Positions 20,550 through 60,566 of a stretch of DNA of 64,000 bases are shown here, in pieces. Source of the stretch: Paragordius varius. Lineage: Eukaryota; Animalia; Nematomorpha. The notes under the pieces were generated by a model. That model did not search any database and was not told where the DNA came from. It saw nothing but the letters and a program-made list of their open reading frames with translations. The translations under genes and the position numbers were made by a program. The DNA is taken from NCBI GenBank assembly GCA_964247055.1, contig OZ176058.1:1116001-1180000 (forward strand). The letters run 5' to 3'. Every line of letters begins with the position of its first letter. Position 1 is the first letter of the stretch.

Positions 20550-23277
20550 TGTTAAATTTTGAATGAGCAGATTAATATATCGAAACGGATTTTTTGAAGC
20601 TATTTATATATTAAAAATTGAAAATCATCCAAAAGAATTATGTAAGGTAAAAAATTTGTTTATAAATAATTATTTTGGTTTGAAAAATTATTATAAAATA
20701 TATTGACGTTAAAAATCAGTTTTTTCAATTAATGGTAATAATGGTTGAAATGTATTGTTAATGATATATTTAGAATGTTCGATAATATACATATATGTAT
20801 ATAATTAGTACATTTAAGTTAAAAACACCTATTTTTAAAGTTAATTTTTATAAATGTATGATTGAACTCCAAAAATCGGCTATATCTTATATAATTCTAT
20901 ATGTAAACAATACTGCGTCCTAAAATCGGGGGTATAAAAAATAATTTGATGAAATATATATATATGTATATATTGTGGTAAGAAAATGTATCAGTATTGT
21001 CATGTTGGTTTTGGTTTTCGCCCTTATGAGCCATATAAGTAATTTATTAAAACTTTTGTGGTAAGTGCTGCTCCATATCAGAAAATGCCATTTGAGCACA
21101 TGTTTGTGTTAATTTTTTTAGTAAAATCTAAATTCTTTATTCCAAAAAATATCACTAAATTATATCAACTACCTAAAAAAAGCAAAACAATATTAAAATA
21201 TTTTAATTTTTACATGTGGACTCCAAAAGTCGCAAGGCTCCTCTAAAATGGGCTATTTTATAATAAACAAAAAAATGCCTGGATTGCGCGATAAAATTTT
21301 ATATATGATAAATTTTGTTATCAAAAATATTTTTAAAAATGTATGCTTTTTACAAAAATTTATTTTTTAGCAAACTTTTGTTGAAGCGTACTTCATTCTA
21401 TTTGGCCTGATAGAAACGGTAAAAAAACGATTTTACTTATTAAAAAAAATACCTTTTCTATATAGTTTGATGATGCGGAACTATCACCGCAGATTGATTA
21501 AAATATTCATTAGTTTTTAAATTTTGTAACATTAAAATTTTAAACGAACCTTTAATTTATGATTCAGAAGCGATAGAAATGTGCAGCATTATCAAATCAT
21601 ATAGACAAATAGTTTTTTTATATCTTAAACACTTATTATATCATTTTCATATCTGGAAATAGTATGAACCAGCTTTATCAAAATTTTGCTAAAAAATAAA
21701 TTTTTATAAAAACTATGCAATTTTAAAAAATATTTTTATTCATGTCCAAATTATGCATATATTTAAATAATTTATCGCGCAATCTCGTTTTTACTTTTAT
21801 TTTAATAAAACTAGTCCATTTTAGAAGAAAAAAATTTGATTACGGAGCCCAGGTCTTAAAATTAAAATATATTAAGAAATATTGTTCAGCTTTTTATAGG
21901 TTGTTTATGATACACTTTGGTTATATTTTTTGGAATAAAGTATTTAGCTTTCATCAAAAGAATTTTATTACAAAAAATATGCTCAAATTTTGCCATTTGA
22001 TATGGAGCTCCTACCATAAAATTGAAAATATAACTTTCTAATATATCATTTGCAATTTTTCATCCTCGAACCTATCAAATACCCTGAAACAATTCGAATT
22101 CTGCTAAAAATTTATGTGTTTTCCGGCTAATATAACTCATAAATATTAGTTTATTATTTTTGAACAAAATATTATCTTTTAAAATTATTAATAGCAGATT
22201 AGTCTTATTCAACGCATAATTGATTTTAGAGTGAATTTTGGTCTGAGGTTAAATTTCATTTGGCCATTTGAAGTGTAAATGGTATATCACCCATAAGGAC
22301 CAAAACAGAATGAAATTCTTGATATTTTTTTTCAGAATTAAAATATTTATAAAAAAATTTTATACGCCGCGATTTAAACGCAATGTTATTAGCGACCTCA
22401 AATGGCCATAAAGTTAACAATCAATAATGCACACATATTAATTTATTTAATAAATTATAGAGAATTGATTGATGGGTATAATAAGTTTAATAATATATAT
22501 TTATTAATAACAAATATTTAATGTTTTCCATAATTTTTTCAAATTTATTAAATTATTTATTAATATATACATATATATATTATCAAGAGACAAACATGTG
22601 TTCGTTTTTGACTGGTACAAAAGCGAATTGCATTGGTCGGTTAAAATTAACCCTAATTATATTTATATAATTTTTTTAAAAATAACATGTTTTATTAGGA
22701 GGAAAAGGGTACTTTATGGTGAAAATAAGTTAATGGATAGCAAATTTATTCGGATGCTAACGATATCAATAGAGGCATGAATAAACTTTTCTAATTCTAC
22801 ATTTTTTTCTAAAATACAAAAATTTGAGTGTACTATAGAATGTAATAAAGTTTAGATATTTTATGATTAGCGCGTTTGTGATACCATTAGTAAGCTTTTT
22901 TTAAATAATAACATTTTATTGTTAACACACAAATTATATTAGGTTCAATAGGGTTGTACGTTTTAAGCTCGATTGAAGCGACGTTTAAACGAAAACAAGT
23001 GGACCCAAAGCACCGGGTGGGATGGATTATATCAAACCTTTTTGATTTTCCAATAAATGAGGCAGAATAAATTTAGTGTATAATAACTTTGTTATCATGA
23101 GTTTTTAGTGCGTTACTTCTTCAAATAAAGATTTTGATTTCAATTTTGTTACTTTATTCGATGCATCAGTGAATAAATATTTACACCTAAACTATCGAGC
23201 ATATAAAAATATATAGTTTTTATAAATTTATTCAAAGTTTGAGTATATATATATATATATATATATATATACTAATG

Positions 23278-25468
23278 TTATTTAAAACTTAATTTTTGAG
23301 TGACTGTTTGTACGGAATCGTGTATAGTTGAAAACATAGCTATTATCTTTTGGTTTTCTTCCATTAACCTTTGTTCTTGACTCATTAGCATATTGTTGTT
23401 GATATTATTATCTGAACCTATAGTAGTCGATACGATCCGGTCTGGCTCCAGTAATTTGCTTTTACTTATCTTATAGCTTGATGGGTTGGCACGCAAAAAT
23501 TTTGATTGTTTTTTTCTAGGTCTTTGCGATGTACTAGATCTTAACAATTCTCTTGACTCATTAACATAATTTTCTAAGGATAATTCTTGGGCAGGTGGCG
23601 GTTTTGAATCATTTAAGTCTGCAATTGCTGAAGCTGTACTACTATTGGTGGTACTACTCTGACTACCGTTCCTATTTTTGGCGTACAAGTCGGTTGATGA
23701 CGTTGAAGACACATGTTTAGTTTTTTCTGTAATCCTCACACTATTTATTTGATTGAGGGGGTTGTTTAATAAGTTGTCCTTATTCTCACTTTCTGTACAG
23801 AAGGCGAGCTTTTGTGGATCAGTAACTATGAATTCAATAGGGGTCATGTTTCCATTCGGGTCAACATTTAAAACAACTGAATGAATTTGCCTTACACTTC
23901 TTTCATCAGGATCGAGAAACTTGTCTAATGCGTGGGCAGTGGCGTTTGTTAGGAATGATGACTCAGTTTTTTTCAAAACGGACGAGCTTGATGATGATGG
24001 TAATGATTGTATTGTCGGTACAGCATTATTTATATTCGATACATTTTTTTGCCTACTTTCTGTTTTAGCACTATTATTATTCTTTATTTTTGTCCTTAAC
24101 TTATCAATAATACTTTGATTGTTTCCTCTATTATTGTTATGGGGTGGCGGTTGTGAATACGAATCGTGATTTTCTGAGTCTTCAGAAAAAATTTCCAAAT
24201 CTTGAACCAGATAATATCTCCGGTATGGCACCTCCTTCATAAACACGCAAAAGCCCAGCACAAAGGTAAGGAGAAACAGAAAGAGTACTAACAATAATAT
24301 TATGAGCCATCCTCCTAACGGAATTGGTTCACGCTTTTCATCAAATTTATTACCATTAGAACCTAAATAAATTATATATATGTATAATTAATTATATCTA
24401 CGTTTAAAAATATAACCTCTTGTCATTGATGCCAATGACTAAATCGATATTTAAAAACAACATTTATCTGGAAATGGGGTTTCTTTAATAAATTAAATGA
24501 AGAACCAATAGTCCTTATTATTTAAACTCTACCTTACCCCTGTGCTATTTTATAGCTAACTGTGTTGTGCTAACCCCGTCGGTTGGTCTAATACCTAATA
24601 TCATTTTGTGTTACCAGTAATCAGTTGACCAATATTCATGCAAAATTTTATCCAAGTTTGCACTTTAATTTCTTTTTTATGTTATACCTTTTCCGAATTT
24701 AGTGAGACTTGTCCGTTCCGGCAACGAGATTGATAATGAATGATGTATCAATGATTTTTTATACGCATATTTTTGGCTTTTATTTTGATAGGCTTGATTG
24801 AATTGCAATAATAACTCTTGTATTTGACGATCGTTATCCCTGTATACTGGGTTGGCGGTTGTTGTTTGATGGGTGTTTGCTTTAATGTTTTGTACAAGTA
24901 GTTCATTCCATAAACTTTGTATTTTCTCGGGTACTTTAGATCCGTTGTTAAAGTTATCGACCATTTTAGAAGATTGTGAATTGTTTGACTGTTTATAAAA
25001 TGTTTCTAATCCAATTGGCAAAGTGTCAGACCTGAAAGGTGCTGGAGATTGCTCAAGTATTTTTTTCACAACTCTGTTTCGTATTTGTTTGATGATATTC
25101 TTCACCGTAGAATAATTGTAGGTTTCTTGTGGTTTAACCACATACCTTTTTGGAATGGATTGAGTTGTTGCCAATGTTTTAAGAAACGTTTGATTTTTTT
25201 CCAATATATTTGTAACATAAATAGCTTTTGGTGTGGGCGCAGTATGCTCACCAACTAACTCATTTGTTAACCCATTTAGGGCATTTATCAAATGATGATT
25301 ACCGTTTGTTGTAATGTTTGTTAAATCTCTACCAAATGTTGTTTTTGTTGTATTGCGGGATTTAATAATTTCAGCCTTAGAACTTGTTTTTGTAGGAGTA
25401 GCCATCCTACATAAGCTAAAACATGCAATGACAATTAATAATGGTTTTGTTAATTGCATAGTAGTCAT
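23278..25468 (-). CDS. Orphan type-I membrane protein, copy 1 (621 aa, 2 exons)
   Basis: Exon 1 is 25468-24688 (781 nt, signal peptide plus S/T/N/K-rich ectodomain, donor AAAG|gtataa). Exon 2 is 24362-23278 (ttatttag|, phase 1), reading GSNGNKFDEKREPIPLGGWLIILLLVLFLFLLTFVLGFCVFMKEVPYRR (TM helix followed by basic residues) plus a ~315-aa low-complexity tail. This joins two ORF-track entries. The same splice sites occur in all three copies. Confidence 0.85.
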
Positions 25469-28400
25469 TTTTTTTGATAATTTTTTTAAATGCCAATATA
25501 TAGTTTTAAGTGATTGTTGACATCATAGCTTACGTCAAATTATTTTCATTTGTAAAATATGTTTTTATTATGAGAGGCGGGTGGTCTATAATAATGAGTG
25601 GGTAAAAGTCGCATTTAACTTGTAAGTCAAGCGTGGCAGGTTAGCAAGTTTACTTAAGCCAGCAAGTGTACACTTGAAGATCTGTGATAAAAAACGCTTA
25701 AGTCAAGTCTTTTGCTTATGAATGCAACAGTTTTTTGCCACCCAATTCGAATTTTATGGAAACTTTTTTAATTTTCAGCTAAAATTTATGATAAGGCACA
25801 AAAAATAAACAATAAATACAATATGCATTTATTGAAGGTTTTCAAACTCACTGGCACATATTTTATTTAATAGAGTTTTCTAAATATTGAGCCTGGTAAT
25901 AATTTTTAGATTGATGAATTCGCCCTTAAAGTTCCAATATTTTACCACACTACACATTTTGTTTGGAGTTCATTTGCAAATATATTGATTATCAACATTG
26001 CATTCGAAATAAATTTATAATGAAATAAACTCTTTATAATTTTAATGAGAAAGTAACCTTCAGCGTCTATTATTTTGTGTAAAACAAAGATTTAAATAAT
26101 TTAAACAATAATATTTAATTATTAATTTAAAATGTTTTCAATCAAATTTTTTTGCGGATTGACGGAATTGATAAATTTATATTTTTATATGCACTGTTCT
26201 TAAATATTAGCAGAGTTTTTTTAAAAATTTATCATCTTTTGAATCAACCCAATTTAAATAGGTTAATTAGCTAAATATTATCAAACAAACAGTTTATAGC
26301 ATTGACAAAGGTTTTATTTACATAAAAAACCTAAACTAAATATAGATATATAATAAAAGGGTTCCAAAATAATTATATCCCTATTTTTTTAACTGTCAAG
26401 TTTGTCCTACACCACACTTTCTAAATCTTCAGGTTATCTTGATCATATGATTTTATATCACCTTCGAAGCAAGTTTTCGTGCTTAAAAATCATATAATGT
26501 TAAATTTTTTTATCATTTAAACGAATGACCTTTAAATCTTGCAAGTCAAGTCAAAAAGTTTTTTATTCCCCAACTCTTATTATCAAACCGTAATAGATCA
26601 AATATTTTCAAGGTAGCCATGTATTACGAATCCTAAGGCTATCCTGAGAATAGTTTCAAACACAAGATATTTGGTGACCTATTTTATAAAATCTTTTACA
26701 CGGAATGGGACGTAATTGAGAGGCTAGGGGCTTGATCATTTTCAGGGCCATATTGAGGATAAAAATGCTTTACTTTAATACTTTGTTACCTTTTCGTTTT
26801 TTGTAAGCGAATGCATTTTGAGCTAGTTTTTTTCCCAAGGCAAGTTATAAAATTACTTTGTAAGATGTTTGGGTTGAAATTGTTCTCATGTATTTGAAAA
26901 AAACTCATATTTCCTAAATTTTCGTACCAAAATAGGTCGAAAGAGCACCTGATTTTAAATATACAATCGGCATTAGCTAATAAAATCTATGTTAAAAGCT
27001 TTCTACAGTTAAATATTTCCATTTATAATCATTTACATTTATTTGCCTTGGTATTAGCGTTATAAAACAATAAAAAATGGTGAAAAATTTTAAAAAAAGA
27101 ATTTTATCTATTCTGTATTAAATTTTTTTTAAGCATTCTCCTAAAAGGCTTAAGAAAATATATTTTTATTTTCAACCAATAATTAATATATTTTTTAAGA
27201 TTTTATTTTTGGTTTAGGATGTTAGATTAGAAATTAGTGAAGTGTTAAAATCAAAGAGACCTACATGTTTTCAAAAGGTTTATTAAAGCAAATTTTTAAA
27301 TTTTTATATTTTATTACTAAAAAATCCATTTATTAATTTCTATCTACAGTCTTTCTGGATCTTAACCTTCAGATCATCCATAAAATAAGTTATAAAAGAT
27401 TTTAATATCCCTTTTTTATATTAAGATATAAATGTAAACTCTTGCAATGGCTTATTGCATATCATTTAAATTTTTTGGAACAAGCTTGGGGTTATCAACG
27501 ACCCAAATCTGATTCCAAGGACAGAAATGAATGTGTTTTATCCAAATGTTTATAAACAATTTTAAAATAAAATTTAAATACCGTATTTTTTTGGCTCCTT
27601 ATTACGAAGTTTTTACCAATATAAACCTTAAATATAAACACAAAATTATTGTAAATGCCAAACTTTGAAGACACACTTTATTCGTAAATTTTCATATATC
27701 TTTTCGGTATTAAATAAAAATTAGAAAGGAGAGTTGGTCATATATGTATGGATATATAAATCAAAAATATATTTTTTTATAATTCGTGGATTTATTACAG
27801 TATGAGTAAGTATATATTGCGAGAAAGTTATTAATTATTGCCGAATAGCATATGCAGCAGCAAAGAGAATTATTATTGGCTAATAATAATAAAAAGTGAA
27901 AAAAATAAATCCAAGCCAATAATATATCTCTTTGTTGTATATGCTATTTGGCAATAATTAATAACTTTTTAGATGTATACTTACTTACTGTATGTAAAAT
28001 CGAAAAATTTTATGTTCTAGTTTACCACAACACCATTCATTGTTATGCCTTTGGAGTTAATGCTATGTCCATAGTCTTTGTAAAAAATATATTTTAATTT
28101 ATTATTAAAATTATCCAGAGTTCGAAAAGTTTTGGTAAATATATTTTGTAGATTCCTGAATTAATTCTTGTTGGTAACCACATATTTAACGAAATTTTTT
28201 TATATTACATCAAATCTCTTCTTAAATTGGAAAAAACACCTTAGATTATTTTTTACTTATGTTTCCCACAAATAAACAGTATTTATGGGTCAACTGACAA
28301 TAAAAGGATCGATTGTCAGAGGCATCCATTATATTTGTGCTCCTTGTTACATAAACCTAGAAAACAATGCTACTTTGCATAAATGTTATTTGTGTACTGG

Positions 28401-30371: not shown

Positions 30372-30914
30372 AAAGATCTATCACATCCAAAAATGGGTCT
30401 CAAAATAAAAACCAAAAATTACAAAGCTGCCCACGAAGATATTTGTGTAAGACACTCCTGATTAAAACATATCATTAATAACGTAAAATAAACTGGTTAC
30501 ATAATCAGATCAACGCAGATAAAATTCTAGTCAGGACCGGAATATAATTCTTGCATGTGCCCGCTTTTTTTATCATTTTCTCTATTTACCATTTACAGAC
30601 CCGTATAATTAATAATATTTTTTATTGCTATATTTAGGTTGACAAAATTAAAATCAGCATACTTTTTCATTTACATTTAGAGATACATTAACGTTGATAG
30701 TAAACAAACAAGGAAATAAGAAATTTAAATTCTAGATTTGACGGCTGGATAAATTATTTTAATTAACTGTACCCTAAAATAAAAATTAAACGGCGTGATG
30801 TAAAACAAACACACATGAAATTAAAATTGATAAATGAGAAGCAGTTATAACTAACATAAAAATTTCATTAAAATGAACCCTAAAATCGAAATTAACCCTT
30901 AATAAACGAAAACT

Positions 30915-31025
30915 GAACACACTGTACTACTTGATTGGTAAAAACAAATACAGGTGATACATACCTCGTTATTTTAATAAAAAAAGATATAAATACCAAA
31001 ACACTATCTATTATTCATCATTTCA
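30915..31025 (+). promoter_or_regulatory. Core promoter of micro-exon gene copy 1
   Basis: Inverted CCAAT (ATTGG, 30934), E-box CAGGTG (30951), TATAAATA (30988-30995) and an Inr-like TCATT about 30 nt further on. Nearly identical at 56766-56875. Confidence 0.65.
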
Positions 31026-31071
31026 TTTTTAATTTTTATATCATCGAAAATTCAATTCACTACATAATAAT

Positions 31072-34000
31072 ATGGAGCAATCACTTGGTGGAACTATTAA
31101 TTTACGATTTGTGACAATGGCTTGTTTTATTAGTTTGATGATTGCTGCTCTAATATTCCCAATAGAAGTGAATAGCTGTATGCATTAAACATCTTTTACT
31201 ATGATTGAATTTATCAATTTTTTTTAAATTTTTGTTAATATACAGTAAAAAATTAAAATTATACGGACAAAACGTAAAAATATAAAGACAAATATTTTTA
31301 TTTAAATACAACCACACTTTTTAAAACTTAATTTTTCTAAATATAACTTATTGTTTCAATATATAAAGTATGAAATAGAGATGTTTATTAGTAACACAAT
31401 CCATTATATAATTTGCAGTTCAAAACAATCAGATACATTAAAATGATACTATATTTAAAAAGGTAGTCTTTTAGAAAAAGATATTTGTCCTTATATTTTT
31501 ACGTTTGATTTTAAATTTAATTTAAAAACTTCTGATGATGCCATTGGGAGAACATTTGAGTTTTTAATAAAAAACCTATTTTTATTTCTTACATTATTCA
31601 CACGACGTTAATACGAATGTTATTTAACAACCCTTCGTCGTCACCCACACAAAATTATATGCTATTTGTTTATACTTTTTTAGGCCCATCGTATGGTAAG
31701 TGTAATCCAATTATCATTTACACTTCTAATTCACCCTAAAATAATTTATTTATAAGTTTTCTTAAATTTCAAATTATCTATATTTTTTATGCGAAATTTT
31801 GTTTAAAATTAAAATAATACTGAAAAAATCATAAACTAAGCTGGGGGTGAATTTGAATCGTTCAAGAGTTATTTGAATTCAAGGGTAAATTTAAATTGTA
31901 AATGATATATGTTAGATAAATATATTTTTTCTAGGTAGAGGAGGGCAACCTGGTAGGCCTGGACAGCCTGGTAGAATTTATATTTTGCAAATATTTTACA
32001 CTTTTTTTTATTGAAAATTAATTAAAATTATTTTTACTAACACTAACCCTAATAATTAGTAGAATTTACGTAAAATTTATATATATAGTAAACACGGCCT
32101 AATATTAATGTTGGTGATTGGCTTAATACAGTAGTGTATTGGTAAAAACAACAAGAAATAGTTGAAATTAATCAATTTTTCTCATCTAACAGCGTTTCTA
32201 AGGTTGATTGATTATTTAGTTTTATGGACTAAATTAGTTTCAAATATACCCTACTGTATTATACCATTTGAACAACAATAAAGTGAATTGGCTAGCTTAA
32301 ACATGCACATACTGTAGGCTCAATTATATAATCGATAAAACATATACTATAAAACAGTGCACAAATTATATAAGAATGATTCTCCTGGGGCTTTTAGACT
32401 TGAGCCTTACGAGTTAGTTAAGAAAGATATTTTATTTTTATGGCTGCTCCCTATGAAAGATCGCAAAATTGGTCCAGAATTAATATTGTGGTAAAGGTTA
32501 AGAACTTAATTTTTTCATATAAATATCTGAAGTTGAAAATCAAAACAGTAATTATATTTCAGAAAGTTAAATTTGGCTGAAATCTTTTTAATACAAAAAA
32601 ACTGAAATTATACGGATAAAACGAAAAATATAAAGACAAATATTTTATTCTAAAAGACCCATACTTTTTAAATTTAGATTATATCAACAAAGCTCATTGT
32701 TATAAAAGTGTCAAATAGAGTATATAATACTACACAATCAATTCTATATTTTACAATTGTAACTTAATAGTAGCTTATATGAGAAAAATTAAGGTTTTGA
32801 AAGTATGGGGTTGTCTTTTAGAAAAAGATATTTGTCTTTACATTTTTACGTTTTGTCCATATAATATCGATTTTTACTGTATATGGTATTTGGATTATGG
32901 TGTGAGGGTTTAAAAATACGCTAACATATCATAATTATGCTTTAAGTAAATTTGTAAAAACTCCGCTATTCACATTAAATTTGGAAACGAACGAAATTAC
33001 AGTAAAAACTAATTTTACGGACAAAACGAAACATATAAAGACAAATATAAAGACAGCCATAGTTTTTTAAAACTTATTTTATGCTATATAAATACTATTA
33101 AATTAAAATTGTAAATTATATAATTGATTCTATTACCAATGATACTATATTCCATACTATGCAATTTAAAACAATGAGTTGTATTGAAATAATTCAAGTT
33201 TACAAAAGTATCATTGTCTTTTAGAAAAAGATATTTGTTTTCGCATTTTTATGTTTTGTCCGTAATATTTCAATATTTACTGTAATTTATAATATAAATT
33301 AATTTATTATTATTAGGTGGTGGGCGAAGAATAGGAGGGCAACCTGGACGACCCGGACAGCCTGGTATATCTTAAACATTCTTTCAATCTAAAATATGGT
33401 CAACTTTTATACATGTTACAAATAACCCTTAAAACTCTTTCTGATTAACAAAGAAACTAAATCATTATATAAATACGAAAAAAAATCGTTATTTTTTAAT
33501 TTTATTTATTTTAATTCTCATTATTGCAATGTAGAAATACCATTTAACATAATATATTTTAATTTTAGGTGGATATGCCTATAGTAAGGACGCCATTTTT
33601 ATTTTACAACATTTTTGCAAAATATCGTGTTTATTTGATTCTAAGGCTGAAATTAAGTCACTTTTTATTAAAATCGGCTAATGCACACATCTCATGTTGA
33701 CTAAATTTTTACCTTTAAGTTTTACCTTAAAATAAGTAACATCAAGAATTTTTGACATTTTTATATATTTTGGTTAATTAATGTTGTAAAAGTGGAAAAT
33801 TTTGCCATAGTTTAAATTTATTACATATTTTTGATATTTTAATCTTAAAACCTGGGGTATCTAACGACCCTAATTTGAATCGAAGGACTGAAATGAATGT
33901 ATTGTATTCGAGTGTTGATTTACTTTTAAAATTTTAAATATTTTTTTATTGAATTCGTTGTTAGTATGAATATAATAAGACAAAAATAAAAAATACCAAT

Positions 34001-37000
34001 TTTTTAAGGTATTCACGGACAACCCGGAGAGCCTGGACAGCCGGGTAATTTATAACTTTTTATTTTAAAAAAACACAAGATATACATAAAAAGTAGATAA
34101 TGCCAAAAAAATTTATACTAAAATTGAAATTATACGGACAAAATATAAAAATATTAAAATAAATATTTTTTTCTACAAGACAATACTTTTTAAAACTTAT
34201 TTTTTGCTATATAAATATCATTAAATTAATATTGTAAAATATATAATTGTTTCTATTACCAATGACACTCTATTTCATACTATGCAATTTCAAACAATGA
34301 GAGTTTTATTGAAATAATTCAAGTTTACAAAAGTATGATTGTCTTTTAGAAAAAAACATTTGTCCATATATTTTTCGTTTTAATCCGTATAATTTCAATA
34401 TTTCTGTAATTTGTAGAATAGATTATAATATATTTAACTATTAGGTGGTGGGCCAAGAATAGGAGGGCAACCTGGACGGCCCGGACAGCCTGGTATATCT
34501 TAAACATTATTTCAATCTAAAATAATATGGTCAACTTTTTTTACATATGTTAAAAATAACCCTTAAAACTCTTTCTGATTAACAAAGAAACTAAATCATT
34601 ATATAAATACGAGAAAGAAATGGTTACTATTTTAATTTTATATATTTTAATCTAAAACAGCTATCTAATCATTATTCCAGTGCAATATAATTTAATGTAA
34701 TTTATTTTATTTTAGGTGGATATGTCTATGGTAAGCGTATGCAATACATTTTCTAAAGCTGTATATATATTTATTTTAACAATGTATACCTTATATTAAA
34801 ATTTAACTTATAAAAAGACAAAATTGAATTTTTTTCGAAAAAAACATTACTCGTGATCACCGGTTAATTCAATTTTTAATGGGGGTATCTAAATACCCCT
34901 AAGTTGATATTTAAAAACTACTGAAAGAACGGTTTCAATCCAAAATTATACTTCTATCCTAATAAAAATTATACTAAAAAGCCAAAATAACTTAATAAAA
35001 TTTAGTTTTAAAAAAAATTCAGTACCAAACAGCTTCGACGGCATTTTTATTTTACAACATTTTTCAAAAATATCGTGTTTATTAGATTAGGCTAAAAAGA
35101 GTTTAACTTTTGATTAAAATCACATAACATTAAGATAATCACATTATTTTTATATTTAGCTAATTCACACATCTCATGTTAGCTAAGTTTTTACCTTTGA
35201 GTTGTACTTGTAATATCGTGTGTTTTAAAAATATTTTATATATTAAAGTTAATTAATGTTATAAAAGTGCAAACTTTTACCATGGTTTTAATTTATTCCA
35301 TATTTTTGATTTTTAATCTTAAACTAAGCTGGGGTATCCAACTACCCCATTTTGAATAGAAGGACGGAAATGAATGTATTGTATCCAAGTGTTAAATAGT
35401 TTTAAAACTTTAAATATTCTTTTTAGTAATTCGTTGTTAACATGAATATAATATGACAAAAATAAAATACCATTTTTCAGGTATTCACGGACAACCCGGA
35501 GAGCCTGGACAGCCTGGTAAATCATATTTTTATTTACAAAACGCAAATACATAAAAAGTATATAATCCCAAAAAAATTTATAGATAACGGGTTAATTCGG
35601 TAAACATATTGCATAAACTCGAGGAAACCTATACGGACAAAACGTAAAAATATAAAGACAAATATTTTTTTTTCAAAAGACAATCATACTTTTTTTAAAA
35701 CTTATTTTGTGCTATATAAATACTATTAAATTGAAATTTAAGATATAAAATTGATTCTATTACCAATGACACGCTATTCCATACTATGCAATTTCAAACA
35801 ATGAGTTTTATTGAAATAATTCAAATTTACAAAAATATGATTGCTTCCTTCGATTTTTACGTTTTATCCGTAGAATTTCAATATTTACTGTAATTTGTAA
35901 TCATTATAATATTTTTGAGAACCGATTTTGTACACTCTGCAAGTAGAACGACTTAATCCCGCCTCCTAAAAAACTAATTTTATGCAAAAAATTTCAAATA
36001 AATATATTTTGTAATGTAAAATTTTATTATATTAATTATTAGGTGGTGGGCGAAGAATAGGAGGGCAACCTGGACGACCCGGACAGCCTGGTTTATGTTA
36101 AACATTATTTCAATCTAAAATATGGTCAACTCTTTTACATGTTAAAAATAACCCTTAAAACTCTTTCTGATTAGTAAAGAAACTAAATCATTATATAAAT
36201 ACGAGAAAAAAATCTTTAATATTTTAATTTTATTTATTTTAATCTAAAACAGCTAAAATCTTATCATTATTCCAGTGCAGAAATATAATTTACTGTAATT
36301 TGCTTTAATTTTAGGTGGAAATGTCTATGGTAAGCGTATTTGCAATACATTTTCCTAAGCTGTATATATATATATATATATATATATTTATTTTTAACAA
36401 ATCTAGAGCCTTATATTAAAATTAAAACTATAGGAAATCAAAATATTAATATTTTTTTCGGAAAAAACATTACTCGTGATCACACTTCGATTTTTAATGG
36501 GGTAACTAAATACCCCTAAGTTGATATATAAAAACTACTAAAAAACGGTTTCAATTTAAATTTATGCTTCTATCCTAATATAAATTATTTTAAAAAGCCG
36601 AAATAAATAAAATTGAGTTTTGAAAAAAGTACCGTACCAAACTGCTTCGACGGCATTTTTTTACAACATTTTTGCAAAATATCGTGCTTATTTGTTTGTA
36701 AGGCTAAAAAAGAGTATAGTTTTTTATTAATATGACATTTAACATTAATATAATTACATAATTTCTATATTTAACTATGTTGGCTAAATTTTTATCTTTG
36801 AGTTTTACCTCTGAATAAATATCGTGTGTTTTTTAAATTTTAATATATATCGGTTAATTAATGTTCTAAAAGTGCAAACTTTTACCATGGTTTAAATTAT
36901 TCCATATTTTTGATATTTTATGCTTAAACAAACCTGGGGTATCCAACGACCTAATTTGAATCGAAGGACTGAAATAAATGTATTGTATCCAAGATGTTAA

Positions 37001-40000
37001 ATTAGTTTTAAAATTTTAAGAAATTTTTTTATTTAATTCGTTAACATGAACATAATATGACAAAAATAAGAAACTACTATTTTTTAGGTATTCACGGACA
37101 ACCCGGAGAGCCTGGACAGCCTGGTAAATCATATCTTTTTATTTACAAAACACAAATACATAAAAAGTGTATAATCCCAAAAAAATTAATAGTAAATATT
37201 GCAATTACCGACAAAACGTAAAAATATAAAGACAATATTTTTTTCTATAAGACAATCATACTTTTTTAAACCTTATTTTAAACTATAAAAAACATTTAAT
37301 TAAAATTGTAAAATACACAATTGATTGTATTACCAATGACTCTCTATTCCATCTATGCAATTTCAAACAATGAGAGTTTTATTGAAATAATTCAAATTTA
37401 CAAAAGTATTATTGTCTTTTAGAAAAAAACATTTGTTTTTATATTTTTACGTTTTGTCCGATAATTTCAATATTTACTGTAATTTGTAATTTGAATTAAT
37501 ATATTTATTATTAGGTGGTGGACGAAGAATAGAAGGGCAACCTGGAAGGCCCGGACAGCCAGGTATATGTTAAACATTATTTTAATCTAGAAAAATATGG
37601 TCAACTTTTTTACATGTTAAAAATAACCCTCCAAAACTCTTTCTGATTATCGGAACGAAATTATTTTTTTATTTATTTTAATCCAAAACTGCTAAAGTCT
37701 AATTATTATTCCAGTGCAGAAATATCATTTAAACTAATATGTGTTAAATTTAGGAGGATATGGCTATGGTAAGCGTATTAGCAATTTATTTTTAACAATT
37801 TTAGCGCCTTATAATATAATTAAACTTATAAGAAGTTAAAATAGAAAAATTTTTTTTCGAAAAAACAATACTCGCTGTAAATAACACTTCGATTTAAATT
37901 GGGGTATCTAAATACCCCAGACAATATTTAAGTTGATATTTTTGAAAAACTACTGAAAGAAACGATTATCAATTTAGACTTCTATCCTAATATATTAAAT
38001 ATTTTGAAAAGCCAAAAAAATAAAATTTAATTTTGAAAAAAGAGCCGTACCAAACTGCTTCGACGGCATTTTTTTACAACATTTTTGAAAAATATCGTGT
38101 TAATTTGATTGTAAGGCTAAAATTATGTTTTATTTTTTAATAAATCACATTTAACATTAATAAAAATACATACTTTTTATATTTAACTATGTTGGCTAAA
38201 TTTTTACCTTTGGGTTTTACCTCCGAATAAGTAATATCGTGTGTTTTTGAAATTTTAACATTTCTTTATATTTCGGTTAATTAATGTTATAAAAGCGGAA
38301 AATTTTGCCATAGTTTAAATCTATTCCATATTTTTGATATATTTATGCTTAAACAAACTTGGGGCATTCAACGACCCTAATTTATCGAAGGACTGAAATG
38401 AATATATTCTATCCAAGTGTTAAATTAGTTTTAAAACTTTAAATATTTTTTCATGTAATTCGATGTTAGCATGAATATTATGTGACAAAAATCAAATAAA
38501 TACAATTTTTTAGGCATTCACGGACAACCTGGAGAGCCTGGACAGCCTGGTAAATATATAACTTTTTATTTATTTAAAACATAATATATATATGAAATAA
38601 TTTATATTAAAATAAAATTATACGGACTAAATGATAAAGAAATATTTTTTTTTCAAGACAACCAACTTTGTTAAATTTTTATTTTTAAATAAAACTGATT
38701 GTTTTAAATTGAAAAGTATAAAATAGAAATAAATTGGTAACACAATCAATTATGCGTTTTATGATTTAATTTAAATGATTTTTATAGGATAAATTCAAGG
38801 TTTAAAAAAGTATGGTTTTAGTAAAAATTTAGTTTCTCTTGTTTTCTATATAATAATTTTAATTTTTATTCCAAATATTTAATTTGATAGGATATGATAG
38901 TTATGGAGGATATGGTGGAAGGGGTAATTTTTTACCTACCTATTTTATTTCAATAATTTGTCAAAAATTTCAAATTTTTAACACTCTACAGCAGGGGTCG
39001 GCAACCTAGGCTTGCGAGCCTAGGTTGGCTCGCCGTGGCTTTTACAGTAAAAACTTATTTTATACGGACAAAACGTAAAAATATAAAGATAAATTTTTTT
39101 AAAGACAGTCAGTCATACTTTTTAAATCATGAATTATATCAATGTAACTTTTGTTTAAAATGACGAGTGTAGAATAGAGATATATATATGTTACTAATAC
39201 AATTAATTCTATATTTTACGATTGTAACGAAAAGGCTTACATATGAAAGATTAAGGAAAAGTATGGTGGTATTTTAGAAAAAAATATTTTTATATTTTTA
39301 CGTTTTGTCCGTATAATTCCAATTTTTACTGTATATGGCTCGCGTATAGTCATATGATACTTCATATTTTAGGTTTTTGATTTAAAAGGGGTGCAAAATT
39401 GCTTAATCATAGCCACATTTTCATTATTAAATAGCATGTAATGTTAAATTGTTCTCCATTTTATAAATATACCATTTGCCTTTCAAGATTGCCCTTAAAA
39501 CATGTTAAGTTGGTATTTATACACCTAAAGTTGGTCCTTTAAATTTTTTGTTTTGTTTTAATCTTTTATCAATCAATTCGTGTATTATTCATCTATTTTA
39601 TCATATTTAAACTTTACTTTATTTAACGCAAACTTTAAATCAATATCAATGTATTTCTTTATTAATTTTTAAAAATATTCTAATTTAAATGAGATTTTAA
39701 CAGGTAATCAAAAAATATAAGTTTTTTGGGCTATCAATAACAACTAATCATTTAGAACATTTATGATTCAATAATTTTGTTAAATTGGAAATATTAGTTT
39801 GCACAAAAAGGTGGTTTTTGAATAAAAAAATATTTTTAAGTGAATAAAAAATATATAATAAATTAAGAAATTTAGTTATAATATAATTAATGCATAAATT
39901 ATGGTTAAACTTGAAACTCAAAGGACCATGAAATGTTCGAGGACACTCTTAAAGTGCAAACGGTATTCTATGATATTGACAAATTATACGTGAGGACAAA

Positions 40001-41848
40001 ACATAAAAACATAAAGACAAATATTTTTTTCTAAAAGACAACCCCATACTTTTTAAAACCCTAATTTTTAATATAATTTATTATTTCAAACGATAAAGTA
40101 TGAGATAGAAATGTTTATTGGTAACACAATCCATTATACAATTTGCACAGTTTAAAACAATCAGATATTTTAAAATAATAATTCAAGATTTAAAGGAGTT
40201 GTCTTTTAACAAAAAAAAAATATTTGTCTATATATGTTTTTACGTTTTGTCCATAGTATAATTTCAATTTTTACTGTATATTATTTTAAATACATAACTA
40301 GTAGTTGTTTATAAAAAAATTTATGGACTAAAAGCGTTTATGATGAGTCAACCACAAAGCAATAAAAAAAGCGTAAAATGCAATTTTTATGGAGACTAAC
40401 TTTGACTTTTGAATACTAATTATTTTCACATGTCCTTTTATATATAAATCGCCAAATCATTATAGATCCTAAGCAGCCTGTTAAAACCAAATTTTTTTTG
40501 AAATATGTATCTTAATGTTGTATTTACAGTATGAGTAAGTAAATAAATATTGCTAGAAAGTTATTAATTATTGTCAAATAGTATAAGCAACATTGAAAGA
40601 GAATTATTATTGGCTAATAATAGAGTAAAAAGTGAAAAAAATAACTAAAAGCCAATAATACTGTCCCCTTTGTTGTATATGTTGCTATTTGGTAATAATT
40701 ACAGTCATGTATCCTTTAATTTATCAAAAATTTATTTTTTTCGTTAAATGGGGGTATAAATATTTGGTAAAGAATGGAAAAAACAAGAACTATGGTATTA
40801 ACAATATTTTAACCATCAAAAAGTATAAAAATTACCATAGAGCTCTTGTTTTTTTCCATTCTTTACCAAATATTTATACCCCCATTTAAAGAAAAAAATA
40901 AATTTTTGATAAAATAAAGGATAACATGACTGTAATAACTAGCAACGTATACTTACTCATACTGTATTTTAAAAGTTTTGACTTATACAACATTGGTGTA
41001 ATAAAATATAAAAATATCCAAAATGACCACATATTGTATTTTAGGTTTTTTGAATGCAAAAATTAAAAAAAAATTCTAATTGGATCATGTTTTTTCACTC
41101 CTATTAATAATTATATCATTTAATATGTATTTTTATTTTTATTAATAGGTGGCTATGGGGGTAATTTATTACAATTAAAAATTTAAATAATACTAAAACT
41201 TAACTGATAATTATTTATTAATTTTGAATTGTTATATTTCTGGATGAATTTATCATTGTATACTAAACTTGTTAGTAATTTAAATATTTATTACTATTCT
41301 ATATAGAACAACTTATAATTTTATGATTTAATCAAATATTTTATATCATACTTACTTTAATATAAAGGGAAATACGTAATAATATAAAGACAAATAATTT
41401 TTCTAAAAGACAACAATACTTTTTATATCTAGTTTTATATTAATATAAATCATTGTTTTAAATGGCAAATTCTAAATAGAGATATATAATCCTACAAAAT
41501 CACTTCTATATATTTTAAATTTATTACTAAATAACTTATATGAGAAAAATTAAGTATGGTTGTCTTTTAAAAAAAATATTTGTTTTTATATTTTTACGTT
41601 TTGTCCATAGTATAATTTCAATTTTTACTGTACCTTTGATATATATATATATATATATATTAAACTTGTTAAAACTAAATACTTGTTTTCTATAAAGAAC
41701 AACTTTTAATATTAAAATTTAAACGAATATTTTATTCTAATATTAAGGGAAAAAACGGCAAAGTGTTGATAAATCTAATGTAGGACCTAAAGGACCAGAT
41801 GCAGATATGGTGACAGGAACTATCCCGTTATCTATTGGAAGAAAATAA
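31072..41848 (+). CDS. Secreted Gly/Pro/Gln-rich repeat protein encoded by micro-exons, copy 1 (17 exons; 215 aa, or 200 aa from the second ATG at 31117)
   Basis: Exons: 31072-31177, 31935-31970, 33317-33364, 33569-33583, 34009-34044, 34445-34492, 34716-34730, 35481-35516, 36043-36090, 36315-36329, 37088-37123, 37515-37562, 37754-37768, 38514-38549, 38891-38923, 41149-41160, 41784-41848. All are AG/GT-bounded, and all internal exons are phase 1-1 multiples of 3. Product: MACFISLMIAALIFPIEVNS-CRGGQPGRPGQP-[GGGRRIGGQPGRPGQP-GGYVY-GIHGQPGEPGQP]x4 (with variants)-GYDSYGGYGGR-GGYG-GPKGPDADMVTGTIPLSIGRK*. Confidence 0.85.
34860..38420. mobile_element. piggyBac-like non-autonomous element present once per exon cassette (about 34860-35395, 36480-36995, 37884-38420; partial at 33590-33910)
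   Basis: Left end (T)AACACTTCGATT..GGGGTATCTAAATACCCC and right end GGGGTATCCAACTACCCC..CCAAGTG|TTAA. The orthologous copy is at about 62580-63110. Confidence 0.6.
40527..40964. mobile_element. CAGTATGAG-family MITE with a nested CAGTCATG fold-back MITE (40702-40932)
   Basis: Both TIR pairs are visible, and the inner element is flanked by TA. Confidence 0.85.
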
Positions 41849-44800
41849 ATTATTAGCTGGGGCGATATATATAAATTTTTCATTTTGGATTTATAACTAA
41901 TAGAATCAAATAAATAAATTTAGTATAGAATTTCTTTGCGACGATATATATATATAAATTTTTTATTTTGGGATTTTATGTAACCAAAAACATATAATCA
42001 AAAATATAAATTTAGTGTAGCATTCCTTTTCCGTTTAAATGGGTTAAAATGTTATTTATAAATACCATTTACGATTCTGATTCACTCGCAAACAATTGAG
42101 ATTCACCCTGAAATTGAATTATGTGTTTTTGGGAAGCTAATACTCATCATTATTATGAAATATCTTTATGGGAAATATATTATTTTTTCAATATTATTAT
42201 TTTTTACAAATAGAGTTAATTTTTATCTTAAAAAAACCATAATTTATTTAGGCTGAATTTGTTCATGGTTGATTTTGAATTTCTAAGATATTATATGTTA
42301 AAGTATACCGTTTCCACCATACTTTAAAATACCATAAATACCTAAATTTTGCAATACAATAATTTTTTGAGCAAATATCTATTTTTGAAAATACTTTTTT
42401 GATGTCAAAATTTTATATTTCAGTTTAATCTCAGCTGTTTGTTTGAATTATGCATTATGTCCCAATTTTAGTCTCTAAAGTCACAAAACTATATAACATA
42501 TAAGCTTTTATATCTAATTTGAGAAAAATGTTTGATAATTAATTTTAATTAAAATTACTTTTAAAACAGTATTGTATTTACAAAATTAAGGTAAACTAGG
42601 GCAAAAACGTAAAAGATAATGAAAGTTTTAAAAATATTTGTGTTTTAACTACATCAAATAAAATTTGATTACTAAAAAATCAATGTTGCTTATTACAGTA
42701 AAAATTGAATAAGGACAAAACGTAAAAATATAAAGATAATATTTTTTTTCCAAAAGACAACCATACTTCTTTTAAACTATTTTTTGCTAATTAAAATTGT
42801 AAATAAATTGATTGTATTACCAATGACTTTCTATTCCTTATTATGCAATTTCAAACAATAAGTTTGAAATAATTCAAGTTTACAAAGTATGCTTGTCTTT
42901 TAGAAAAAAATATTTGTCCTTATATTTTTACGTTTTGTCTATATAACTTAAATATATACTCTGTAAGTTGTAATGAGGTATTTTATCATTAATTTAACAA
43001 TTATAATATATTTAATAAAATAGAAATTTTTTATTTTTCTTTAAATTGGTTATATATACAGTAAAAACTTAAATTATACGGATTATTATTAAAACGTTTT
43101 ATTCCCTGTTTTACAAACTCTGAAAGAATTTATCAATAAAATAAAAAATTAAAAAAATTATTTAGCTTTATTTTCCCATGATTTCATTTTTAATAAATTT
43201 ATTATATTTGTTGTTCCAAAATGAAGGCAAAATTGCTGGATTTCGCATAACAATTTTTATTTTTTCCGTATGCACTAGACCACACGGTATCTAAAAATGG
43301 CTTCAAGGGCGGCATTATATATATGTATGGGCTTTCATTCCTAATATAGTATTAAAATTACACAAAGAAAACGGAAAAATAAAAAGAAATATTTTTTTCT
43401 ACATGACAAATTCGTATAAATCATACTATTTGATTGTGTTACCAATATCATATCTATTTTATATGTTGAAATTACCTATAATGTATTAAGTAAATTAATA
43501 TTTAAAAAGTATAGCTGTCATTGAGAAAAAGATATTTGTCTTTACATTTTTGCATTTTGTCCGTATAATTTTTTTAAGCATAAAATTATATTTTTTGTAA
43601 CCTATTCTAAAGACTACAGTACACCCCCCGACCCTCCTCAGAATCAAACTTATTTTTATTATTACACGTTTCTCCGTTTTTAGTAAAAACTGCTTATTAA
43701 GTGTTGATCGTTCGATGAACACAATCGTAAAATTCTGTTAATAAGCTAAAAAAAATAAAATTTAATTATTTTTCAATAATTTTAGAATAAAAATCTGAGT
43801 ATTATTATTTATTTAAACCGGCCTGACCGGATAATATATGCTGTTACTCGCGCTCTGGAATTAATAAATACAATCCCTAAATACATATATTAAAAATAAC
43901 TAAAATGGAATAGACTGATAATATTAATAACAACAAATATTTAATATTTTTTCTATAATATAACATTCACAATTCAAATTCACCCTTAAACAATTAAACA
44001 CCCTCGAACGATTCAAATTCAGCCTCAAATAAAATATATGTTATTTAAGCTTAAAAATTACTATAAAAAATAAAAAAAATTTAAAATAAAATAATAGTAA
44101 AAAAATAATAAACTATGCCATAAAAAATATTTTATATTATTGATGTGTTATATTAGTTTGAAAACACATAATTTTATAGGGCGAATTTGAGTTTGAACTG
44201 TAAATGTAAAATTTGGATCTCATACAATTAGTTTATATATATTCTTCATGGATATAACAGGTTTTCATTTTTGACTTGTTATTTATGAAAGCGGTAAAAA
44301 ATATACATGTATTTGTTTAATTCCATACATAATCTTATTATAAATCTTTCTAAAAGCAACATTTTATAAGAAGGAAAAGGGTAAAAACATGAAGGTGTTT
44401 AATCAATCGATTATTTCAGCAAACTTACGCGAATGTATCTAACTATGTTAATAGAGCCATGTATAAATCTTTTGTAATTCTACATTTTTAATTTGAAATA
44501 AAACTTGGGTGTACAATGGATTGTTAAAGGTTTAGATATCTTATGATTACCGCGTTTTTTGTGATACCATTTGTACCTTTTCCTTAAACGGTAACATATC
44601 ATTATTACACAAATTTTAGTTTAGGTTAATTATGAGTGTACCGTTTTAACGCGAATTGGGCTGAGGTTCAATAAAATAACCCAAAGCACCGAATGAAATG
44701 GATTATATAAAACCTTTTTGATTTGCCAATAATTGAGGCAGAATAAATTTTGTGTATAATAACTTTGATGAATATTTTTATGGTGCGTTCCTACTTCATC

Positions 44801-44943
44801 AATAAAATTATGGATTTTAATTTTGTTACTTTATTTGATGCATCAATGAATGAATATTTACACCTAAACTATGGAGCATAGCTATAGCAATATATAGTTT
44901 TTAATAAATTTATTTAAAGTTTGCGTATATATATAAGCTAATG

Positions 44944-47125
44944 TTATTTAAAACTTAATTTCTGGGTGACCGTTTGTACGGAATCGTGTATAGTTGAAAA
45001 CATAGCTATAACCTTTAGGTTTTCTTCCATTAACCTTTGTTCTTCCCTCTTTACCATATTGTTGTTGATATTATTATCTGAACCTATAGTAGTCGATACC
45101 ATTCGGTCTGGCTCCGGTAAGCTTTTACTTATCTCATAGCTTGATAGGTTGGCACGCAAAATTTTTGATTGTTTTTTTCTCGGTCTTTGCGATGTACTAG
45201 ATCTTAACAATTCCCTTGGCTCATTAATATAATTTTTTAAGGATAATTCTTGGGCAGGTGGCGGTTTTATATCATTTAAGTCTGCAATTGTTGAAGCGGT
45301 ACTGATACTGGTGGTACTACTCTGACTACCGTTACTATTTTTGGCGTACAAGTCGGCTGATGACGTTGAAGACACATGTTTAGTTTTTTCTGTATTCCTC
45401 ACACTATTTGTTTGATTGAGGGGGTTGTTTAGTAAGTGGTTGTCCTTATTCTCACTTTCTGTACAGAAAGCGAGCTTTTGTGGATCAGCAACTATAAATT
45501 CAATAGGGGTCATGTTTCTATCAGAGTCAACATTTAAAACAACTGAATGAATTTGCCTTACACTCCTTTCGTCGGGATCGAGAAACATGTCTAATGCGTG
45601 GGCGGTGGCGTTTGTTAAGGATGATGACTCAGTTTTTTTCAAAACTGAGCTTGATGATGGCAATGCTTGTATTAGCGGTACAGCATTATTTATACTCAAT
45701 ACATTTTCTTGCGTATTTTCTGCTTTAGCACTATTATTATTCTTTATTTTTGTCCTTAACTTATCAATGATACTTTGATTTCTATTATTATGGGGTGGCG
45801 GTTGTGAATATGAGTCGTGATTTTCAGAGTCCTCAGAAAATATTTCCAAATCTTGAACCAGATAATATCTCCGGTAAGGCACCTCCTTCATAAACACGCA
45901 AAAGCCCAACACAAAGGTAAGGAGAAACAGAAAGAGCACTAACAATAAAATTATGAGCCATCCTCCTAAGGGAATTGGTTCACGCTTTTCATGAAAATCA
46001 ACAGGACGAAAATCTAAACGAATATAATATATATATTATAAATGTTGTAAAAATAAAATTTTGTTTTTGCTACCAATGATAACATTGATAGTTAAAAAAA
46101 CATATAATTAGTAAATGGAGTTTCTTATTCAAATTAATTGAATAACCAGCAGTACATCATTTAAATTATAGTTTACACTTGTGCTATTTTATAGTTACTC
46201 TTGTTGTGCTAACCGCGTAGGTTGCTTTAATACCTTATATCTTTTTGTGTTACCAGTAATCAGTGTTCAATATTCTTGCAAAATTATTATTAATTTTACA
46301 CTTTTTTTATTACAAATTTATTTATGTTATACCTTTTCCTAAATTAGTAGGACTAAGACTTTGTTCCGGCAACGAAGTTGATGCCGAATGATGTATTAAT
46401 AATTTTTTATAGGCATACCTTTGGCTTTTATTTTGATAGGCTTGATTGAATTGCAATAATAACTCTTGTATTTCACGATCGTTATCCCTGTATACTGGGT
46501 TGACGGTTGTTGTTTGTTGGGTGTTTGCTTGGATAATGTTTTGTACAAGTAGTTCATTCCATAAACTTTGTATTTTCTCGTAAACTTTAGATGTGTTATT
46601 TAAGTTATTGACCATTTTAGAAGAATGTGAATTGTTTGACTGTTTATAAGATGGTTCTAATCCGATTGGCAAAGTGTCAGACCTGAAAGGTGCTGGTGAT
46701 TGCTCAAGAAGTATTTTTTTCACAACTCTGTTTCGTATTCGTTTGATGATATTCTTCTTTACCGTGGAATAGTTGTAGTTTTTATGTGGTTTAACCATGT
46801 ACTCTTTTGTATTGGAATGCCTTGCCAATATTTTAAGGAACATTTGAGTATTATCCAACTTATTTGTAACATATATAGCTTTTAGTGTGGGGGAAGTATG
46901 CTCACCAACTAACTCATTTGCTAACCCATTTAGGGCATTTATCAAATGATGATTACCGTTTGTTTTAATGTTTTTAAAATCTCTACCAAATGTTGTTTTT
47001 GTTGTATGGAGTAGGGATTTAATAATTTCAGCCTTAGAACTTGGTTTCGTAGAAGTAGCCATGCTACATAAACCAAAATATGCAATGACAATTAATAATA
47101 GTTTTGTTAATTGCATAGTAGTCAT
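44944..47125 (-). CDS. Orphan type-I membrane protein, copy 2 (620 aa, 2 exons)
   Basis: Exon 1 is 47125-46333 (793 nt, AAAG|gtataa). Exon 2 is 46013-44944 (cgtttag|, DFRPVDFHEKREPIPLGGWLII...). All indels relative to copy 1 are in-frame. Confidence 0.85.
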
Positions 47126-48647
47126 TTTTTTGATAGTTTTTTATTAATGCAATATAAATTAAGTGATTGTTGACATCATGACAAACGCAAGTTCTTTTGA
47201 ATTTGTAAAAGGCATTTATTATGAGCGGGTCGTCTATAATAATGACTGGATAAAAGTCGAACTTGACTTGTAAGTCATGTGTGGCAACTTGAGCAAGTTT
47301 ACCAGTAAATGTACACTTGAAGATCAGTGAAAACACTTAAGTCAAGTCTTTTGCTTATGAATGTAACATTTTTTTGCCATTCGAATTTCACGGTAATTAT
47401 TCTGATCATTTTCAAATTTATGAAATAAGGAATTAAAAGATAAATAATCAATTCAATATGCATTTATTGAAGTAACTTAAACTAGGTGACACGTATCTTA
47501 TTAATATTTTAGATATTAAATATTGAGCTCGTAACTAAAATTTTTAAGTTGATATGAACCCATTCGCCCTAAAAACAATCTATATTATTTTACCACACTA
47601 CTCATTTTGTATAGAGTCCCTTCGCAAATTTAATGGGAAGATGTTAATAGATTATCAACATTCTTATTTGATTATCGAAGTTACATTTTTGAGCTAATGA
47701 TGAAATAAACTCTTTACATGTTTCAATGGTGAAGTAACCTTTATTTATTATTTCATGTAAAACGATTCAAATTTAAAACATGATTATTATTTAATTATTA
47801 ATTTTGGATATTTTCCAGAATCAAATTTTTTGGGGGAATACGGAATTGATATTTACTATATTTTTATATGCATTGTTCTTAAATATTAGCAGAGTTTTCT
47901 AAAATATTCTCTTTTCTATCCTCCCAATTCGAATAGGATTCTGCCAATATCTACCAAATAAACAATTTATATCATTAACAAAGTTTTAATTGCATAAAAA
48001 GCCTAAATTACATACATAAATAGTTTCCAAAATATTTTTCTCCATATTTTTAAATCTGTCAAGCGTGCCCTACACCACACTTAAAAATCTTCATGTTTTA
48101 CTTGATAATATGATTTTTTTAACCTCCGAATCAAGTTTTCTTGCCTAACTTAAATTCTTAATTGTTAATTTTTCTCACATTAAAGCAAGCCATAACTTGG
48201 AAATCTTGCAGGCCAAGTCAAATAAAGTATTTTATTCCCCAACTATTATTATAACACCGTATTAGATCAAATATTTTCAATGTATACATGTATTACAAAG
48301 GATCCCTACGTTTTCCGGAGAATAGTTCCAAAGACAATTTCAGAGATCTATTTTATTTAAAACCTATCACACGGAATGGGAAATAAATGAAAGGATAGAG
48401 GGCTTGAGCATAAAGACATGACAATGAATGAGAAAAAAATGCTTTATTTTAACACTTCTTTACCTTTTCATTTTTTGTAAGAGATTGCATTTTGAGCTAG
48501 TTTTTTTCCCGGGGCTTAAAGCAATAATATTTTGTAAGATGTTCTCATGTATTTGAAAATTGTTTTGTTCGTACTAAAACATGTTTAATACAATTTTGAT
48601 TTATAAATATCAAAATTGACCGGTAAAGCTGAGAGCGTTCTACATCT

Positions 48648-49203
48648 AACACTTGGATACCACACATTCATGTCCTTTTATAGTTAAATACCCAAGAATG
48701 TTTAAAATTAAATACTTTCAAAAAAATGAAAGTAATCGAATCCATGACAAAAGTTTGCAGTTATATAACATTAATAAACTGAAATATAAAAAAATTATTA
48801 AAAAAACTAGATATTACTTATTTTAATGACCCAAAGGTAAAAATTTAGTCAACGTGACATGTGCAATGGTAAAATTGAAAAATAATACAAAATAAACCGC
48901 TTTTTCTATTTCTATCAATGTTAGATGTAATTTAAATAAAAAATTGGCTTAAATTTTGCCCTAAAATTAAATGGAAACGATGTTTTGCAAGAACTTTGTA
49001 TAATAAAAATGGCGTGGAAATAATTTGACATGGAACTTTTTTAAAAACAAAATTTCATTTAGATATTTTGGCATATTTATATAATCTTTATTAGGATAGA
49101 AGCATAGATTTAAATTGGGACCGTTTCCCTTAGTAGTTTTTTAAATATCATAACTCAAATTTAGTCTGGGGTATTTAGATACCCCAATTTGAATCGGAGT
49201 GTT
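48648..49203. mobile_element. piggyBac-like non-autonomous element (same family and orientation as 4342-4832)
   Basis: AACACTTGGATAC...GAATCGGAGTGTTTAA. The internal sequence matches the reverse complement of the intronic elements at 34860-38420. Confidence 0.6.
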
Positions 49204-50738: not shown

Positions 50739-50745
50739 TTTGTCT

Positions 50746-56875: not shown

Positions 56876-56922
56876 ATTTTTAATTTTTATATCATCTAAA
56901 ATTCAATTCACCACATAATAAT

Positions 56923-60072: not shown

Positions 60073-60110
<38 letters not shown>

Positions 60111-60506: not shown

Positions 60507-60566
<60 letters not shown>

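Follow-up and report, generated by a model that had tools for sequence, protein, structure and literature searches.

A micro-exon gene of Paragordius varius with a predicted secreted Gly/Pro/Tyr-rich repeat product

The window analysed here is a stretch of 64,000 nucleotides from the nematomorph Paragordius varius (contig OZ176058.1, positions 1,116,001 to 1,180,000 of the forward strand); all coordinates below count from its first letter. Positions 31072–41848 of the plus strand hold what, from the pattern of sequence evolution, is very probably a working protein-coding gene (gene A). It is divided into 18 exons, and the 16 internal ones measure only 12–48 nt. The exons join to an open frame, the larger ones are conserved in the manner of coding sequence, a cassette of three exons has been amplified within the gene, and a paralogue (paralogue B) lies downstream. 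The predicted product is a secreted, cross-linkable matrix protein of elastomer- or collagen-like type, a reading to which we give a probability of roughly 0.55.

The exons were read from the sequence and joined by script. The spliced frame is 660 nt long, encodes 219 amino acids without a stop and is spread over 10.8 kb. All internal exons are preceded by AG and followed by GT (16/16), have lengths that are multiples of three and are in phase 1-1, with the codon split after its first base; except at exon 2, the split codon is that of a glycine. The donors match G/GTAAGT (the slash marks the border; G at −1 in 15/17, A at +3 in 16/17), and pyrimidine-rich tracts precede the acceptors. The internal micro-exons carry 489 of the 660 coding nt (74%) at a GC content of 59%. 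The introns (191–2225 nt each, 10.1 kb together) have a GC content of 22%, in a window that is very AT-rich as a whole (GC 21–34% in 2-kb steps). Chance was estimated from 300 first-order Markov simulations passed through the same island filter. GC-rich phase-1-1 AG/GT islands of at least 30 nt number nine in the region, as compared with a simulated mean of 0.04 and a maximum of 1. The GC-rich phase-1-1 AG/GT filter found no further exons in the long introns. A minus-strand reading of the exons gave only scattered AG/GT candidates and no consistent chain, and was rejected. No open reading frame (ORF) of at least 110 amino acids lies within the gene region, so the gene is invisible to an ORF listing. 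An earlier note on this DNA had described the AG/GT borders, the uniform phase, the lengths divisible by three, about 650 coding nt over 10.8 kb and the absence from the ORF track, all of which agree with our reading. The micro-exons and positions that it gave were borne out as well; its count of 17 exons, 15 of them internal, is corrected to 18 and 16.

At the 5′ end, a TATAAATA box is located at 30988–30995 (plus strand), 77 nt 5′ of the first ATG, and is kept in paralogue B at about 56838–56848. The promoter-proximal segments of the two copies (30609–31506 and 56483–57359) are 84% identical. Of the TATA/Inr promoter proposed in the earlier note, this box is the TATA element, and the Inr was judged by eye only. 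Exon 1 (31072–31177, 106 nt) encodes a signal-peptide-like sequence and ends in phase 1 before GTATGC; it has two in-frame ATGs (31072 and 31117), both of which are present in the paralogue. Exon 2 (31684–31695, 12 nt) has AG/GTAAGT borders and is absent from the paralogue. Exon 3 (31935–31970, 36 nt) carries the first GQPGRPGQP block and shares 35/36 nt with the paralogue exon at 60365–60400. Exons 4–15 consist of a three-exon cassette (48, 15 and 36 nt) that is repeated four times with a period of 1.1–1.6 kb. Cassette 1 (33317–34444 with its introns) is made up of exons 33317–33364 (48), 33569–33583 (15) and 34009–34044 (36); cassette 2 (34445–36042) of exons 34445–34492 (48), 34716–34730 (15) and 35481–35516 (36); cassette 3 (36043–37514) of exons 36043–36090 (48), 36315–36329 (15) and 37088–37123 (36); and cassette 4 (37515–38890) of exons 37515–37562 (48), 37754–37768 (15) and 38514–38549 (36), all on the plus strand like the exons on either side. 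Exon 16 (38891–38923, 33 nt) encodes the Tyr/Gly-rich YDSYGGYGGR and is identical to the paralogue exon at 63616–63648, and exon 17 (41149–41160, 12 nt) encodes GGYG. The terminal exon (41784–41848, 65 nt coding) encodes a unique 20-residue tail ending in GRK. Its TAA stop (41846–41848) is overlapped by an AATAAA (41844–41849), in line with the terminal exon with stop and AATAAA described earlier.

One indication of coding function is the way in which the cassettes have diverged from each other. When the four cassettes are aligned with MAFFT, the exon columns are 89–97% identical; the intron columns are 78–88% identical where they align, with 200–580 gapped columns per pair, and the ungapped 30-nt flanks of the exons reach only 60–66%. 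The proportion of synonymous differences (pS) is 0.164 and that of non-synonymous differences (pN) is 0.031 in the 48-nt exons; the values for the 36-nt exons are 0.125 and 0. Because pS far exceeds pN in both, the silent sites appear to drift at about the intron rate while the amino acids are conserved. One DNA-like run, from a related organism, contains 0.69 of the words of the terminal exon versus 0.19 of those of a mostly intronic 6 kb. When contigs of the related organism were aligned to 30950–34500, they covered the exons, and the sole exon difference listed is a synonymous one (G>T at 34043). This backs a coding gene, more weakly than the evidence of the cassettes and the paralogue. The open frame, cassette exons conserved beyond their introns and the excess of pS over pN describe a real-looking, intact micro-exon gene under selection, which upholds the gene proposed in the earlier note. 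That the locus is no working gene, but a silent relic or the product of chance, is highly improbable. No RNA contigs were found in the RNA-type runs examined and the exon-1 product is on record nowhere searched, as a relic would have it, but the frame is open over the 18 exons of gene A and all 8 in-window exons of paralogue B, the large exons have more synonymous than non-synonymous change, the exons stand out as conserved islands within decayed introns, and 9 islands are seen where 0.04 would be expected.

Paralogue B (56923–64000, plus strand) is a segmental duplication that runs past the end of the window, with eight exons inside it (56923–57028, 58944–58985, 59786–59824, 60365–60400, 62164–62211, 62441–62455, 63207–63239 and 63616–63648). 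It starts 25.8 kb downstream and shares with gene A the TATA box, the two ATGs and the layout of the first exon. All of its exons in the window are AG/GT-bounded and in phase 1-1, and their frame is open. The exons shared by the two copies are about 6% diverged, the surrounding DNA about 20%. Gene A has four cassettes and paralogue B has one, and the 5′ modules differ. At the place that matches exon 2 of gene A (31684–31695), paralogue B has a (TA)n microsatellite (about 60078–60108). It also has two extra Gly-rich exons (58944–58985 and 59786–59824) in a stretch without a counterpart in gene A. Its copy of the 36-nt exon (63207–63239) is only 33 nt long through an in-frame loss of 3 nt, which turns GEPGQP into GKPEP. 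As far as the two copies tell, the module change seen here is evolutionary and not at the transcript level. We propose that the gene grows and shrinks by the gain and loss of whole exon cassettes. Such changes stay in frame because the phase is uniform, and the same property would permit in-frame skipping.

The N-terminus of the predicted protein has a charged start, a hydrophobic core (Kyte–Doolittle peak 2.85) and then a proline. The Cys at residue 36 is preceded by Ser at −1 and Val at −3, in agreement with the −3/−1 rule. These features fit a cleaved signal peptide and, judged from the sequence, bear out the signal-peptide exon that had been suggested. The predicted mature part of 184 residues is rich in Gly (37%), Pro (17%), Gln (10%), Arg (8%) and Tyr (6.5%) and contains 1% Lys; its calculated pI is about 10 (basic). 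Each cassette encodes GG(R/P)RI(G/E)GQPGRPGQP, then GG(Y/N)xY and then G/S-IHGQPGEPGQP. Blocks of GQPG(R/E)PGQPG alternate in this way with GGY-type linkers, and the product is the modular repeat protein expected in the earlier note. The C-terminal part consists of a Tyr/Gly-rich stretch followed by the unique 20-residue end. There is a single Cys in the mature protein, which is not present in the paralogue. No Pfam family (Collagen included) was matched by one 34-residue cassette unit at E values up to 10, and none by the exon-1 peptide or the terminal-exon peptide. The 38-residue exon-1 read-through had 0 matches among 1.84 billion protein representatives, a search that covered this piece of the protein, and the same product is absent from the records of called genes. 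No paper in the literature searched contains the repeat strings. The family, which the earlier note did not recognise, has no relatives for these tested pieces in the collections searched.

All of the repeat prolines are located in the Y position of G-X-Y, the position that is hydroxylated in collagens. These blocks, and exon borders that interrupt Gly codons as they do in many genes for non-fibrillar collagens, raise the alternative of a true collagen with a short chain, perhaps one of the cuticle, which would assemble into triple helices. We consider this quite unlikely. The longest G-X-Y run has five triplets, with an interruption every 12–15 residues, and the 34-residue unit has no match to Pfam Collagen up to the E value of 10; the one Cys of the mature protein leaves it without the flanking Cys clusters of nematode cuticle collagens, and a trimerisation domain is not apparent.

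For a structural matrix protein, the reading that we prefer, the following picture can be drawn. Removal of the signal peptide would leave a basic 184-residue low-complexity protein, in which Gly-Gly-Tyr linkers come between short G-X-Pro blocks (GQPGRPGQP, GQPGEPGQP) and a stretch close to the C-terminus is rich in Tyr and Gly. It would be secreted into an extracellular matrix, such as cuticle, egg or attachment material. The Pro/Gly turns would result in a flexible elastomer- or collagen-like chain. The Gly-flanked Tyr residues, placed on 15-nt exons of their own and in the C-terminal stretch, may act as cross-linking points; dityrosine cross-links are established in nematode cuticle and in resilin.

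The dibasic residues that head the cassettes allow a different reading, in which the protein is a polyprotein precursor. Convertases would cut at these sites and the C-terminal Gly-Arg-Lys would mark amidation, such that several Gly/Pro/Tyr-rich peptides, for example antimicrobial or signalling ones, are released. The Gly/Tyr-rich NLP/CNC peptides of nematodes offer a possible comparison. In three of the four cassettes GGG is followed by RR, for which the paralogue has RK, a pair that is still dibasic; the protein ends in IGRK before the stop, has a signal-peptide-like N-terminus and is small (184 residues). However, cassette 2 has PR in place of RR, the released pieces would be 18–60 residues long and of low complexity, and the dibasic pair could be part of a basic structural repeat. 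We regard a precursor as unlikely.

Several points weigh against a cross-linked matrix protein. The matrix and cross-linking functions are assigned from composition. In the 15-nt GGY exons, pS is 0 and pN is 0.143, and the residues between Gly and Tyr vary; by this comparison, the linkers are not tightly fixed. Between the paralogues, the ratio of non-synonymous to synonymous rates (dN/dS) comes to about 1; the signal peptide, whose exon has 8 non-synonymous and 2 synonymous changes, accounts for this value. Contigs from three RNA-type runs (X7, X8 and X9) gave 0 alignments on 30950–34500 at 85% likeness. In RNA-type runs X7–X11, which carry the same species label, none of the sampled words of the terminal exon is present. 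The RNA-type evidence consists of contigs of modest runs, for which an empty result is no proof of absence, and a matrix gene could well be silent in these runs. As no RNA could be brought to bear, the case for the gene is made by its sequence evolution.

The earlier note had also proposed that the protein can be diversified combinatorially by exon skipping; this is unsupported by any data, with no RNA contig on the 5′ 3.5 kb. The corresponding alternative is a host-interface protein resembling those of the schistosome micro-exon genes (MEGs), in which micro-exons are skipped in many combinations to give a variable secreted repertoire. The symmetric phase means that any subset of the 16 internal exons could be skipped in frame, the signal-peptide exon and conventional last exon match the MEG layout, and the signal-peptide exon evolves fast (the 8 versus 2 changes given above). 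Against this, no transcript of any kind was found in the RNA-type runs examined, and the large exons are under purifying and not diversifying selection. The repeats are near-identical, and skipping would alter the length of the protein more than its sequence. Gly-rich repeat genes that are spliced constitutively would show uniform phase just as well, and it would equally follow from duplicated cassettes with borders within Gly codons, the arrangement known from elastin and collagens. The composition, too, points more to a structural matrix protein than to a host-interface role, and we think this alternative unlikely.

The introns consist largely of copies of two repeats. A palindromic element of about 290 bp, resembling a miniature inverted-repeat transposable element (MITE), occurs, in either orientation, in most of the long introns of both gene A and the paralogue. 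The copies in gene A are located at 31236–31523, 32592–32884, 32997–33306, 34104–34412, 35630–35901, 37181–37498, 38615–38868, 39040–39340, 39981–40286 and 41356–41636, and one copy lies just 5′ of the first exon of each cassette. In the related organism's run, the word depth is about 19,700 in one bin over a MITE-like copy. In each cassette, the intron that separates the 15-nt from the 36-nt exon is filled by a second high-copy repeat (33589–33925 in cassette 1), which is also present at 48644–49203 on the minus strand; its word depth in the same run is 4,800–8,100. The 2.2-kb intron contains nested inverted repeats (about 40526–40968), one palindromic element within another, and a related piece is found at 59130–59380 in the paralogue. 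Such repeats would offer ready substrates for unequal crossing-over. Gene A is adjoined by an orphan two-ORF gene on the minus strand that was duplicated with it (22663–26869, 44338–48543 and 50739–52405). The second copy is 81% identical and the third, partial copy 86.5%. The 263-residue ORF of this gene has no homologue in the protein collection. A search for orthologous loci via the neighbouring orphan ORFs failed, as these ORFs are not on record.

ORF searches do not show genes of this type, and gene predictors easily pass over them. The public collections searched contain no predicted protein that carries this first exon. An entire class of secreted proteins may therefore be missing from the proteomes of this animal. 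In the literature searched, accounts of micro-exon design come from blood flukes and aphid relatives, and the sole co-mention of Nematomorpha is in a flatworm phylogenomics study. A further independent micro-exon lineage would bear on how such genes arise; here they seem to do so by duplication of cassettes, amid introns crowded with copies of transposons. The product would be a candidate component of the extracellular matrix in this animal and would provide a modular Gly/Pro/Tyr elastomer of natural design. More speculatively, and with little confidence, we suggest that this lineage independently evolved micro-exon genes on a large scale and that the family plays the part of elastin in an invertebrate: its products would be secreted elastomers, cross-linked through Tyr, and the number of three-exon cassettes would tune their length and stiffness, perhaps with stage-specific skipping of cassettes.

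Gene A resembles several known systems, and the likenesses are ones of design, with no descent claimed. Resilin and other Gly/Tyr-rich cross-linked cuticle and eggshell proteins are a general comparison: they share Gly/Pro/Tyr/Arg-rich repeats, and the Gly-flanked Tyr residues of gene A are candidate dityrosine sites. Since repeats and the 20-residue tail make up the whole mature protein, a chitin-binding R&R domain could not be accommodated in the product of gene A. With collagens, those of nematode cuticle in particular, this product has in common G-X-Y blocks, Pro in Y and exons split inside Gly codons; it differs in that the blocks have only 4–5 triplets, Cys clusters are lacking and the one unit searched has no Pfam Collagen match.

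Schistosome MEGs have a 5′ exon encoding a signal peptide, symmetric micro-exons with lengths in multiples of 3, long introns and a conventional 3′ exon (10.1101/2023.06.21.545858). They are hard for automatic annotation and are described as specific to Schistosomatidae (10.1101/2023.06.21.545858), which makes the resemblance one of design and not of descent. Gene A shares the signal-peptide first exon, the symmetric micro-exons, the long introns and the conventional last exon, and ORF finding misses both. Gene A is from a different phylum, however, its product is a Gly/Pro/Tyr-rich tandem repeat and not a short divergent peptide, and its large exons are under purifying selection. The bicycle genes of aphids have many micro-exons, almost all of which start at codon position 2, and encode secreted proteins (PMC9168663). 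Gene A has the same intron phase and likewise many micro-exons, but bicycle proteins are defined by paired CYC motifs, whereas the mature protein of gene A has a single Cys and belongs to another lineage.

The vertebrate tropoelastin gene would be the closest documented design. All of its exon borders are in phase 1:1, and its small exons encode by turns modules that form the chain and modules that cross-link it, an established layout for an elastomer (10.1101/2024.12.03.626628). This layout permits cassette-like removal of exons; alternative splicing is extensive, and exon number varies among relatives (10.1101/2024.12.03.626628). Gene A has the same all-1:1 phase and alternating module exons, and both proteins are of low complexity and rich in Gly and Pro. 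The exons of gene A are far smaller (12–48 nt), and its candidate cross-link residues are Tyr, as compared to Lys in the KA/KP motifs of tropoelastin. Its blocks are polar (G-Q-P, G-R-P, G-E-P), whereas those of tropoelastin are hydrophobic and of the VPGVG type. The elasticity of the gene A product is a proposal, and the two have no sequence relationship.

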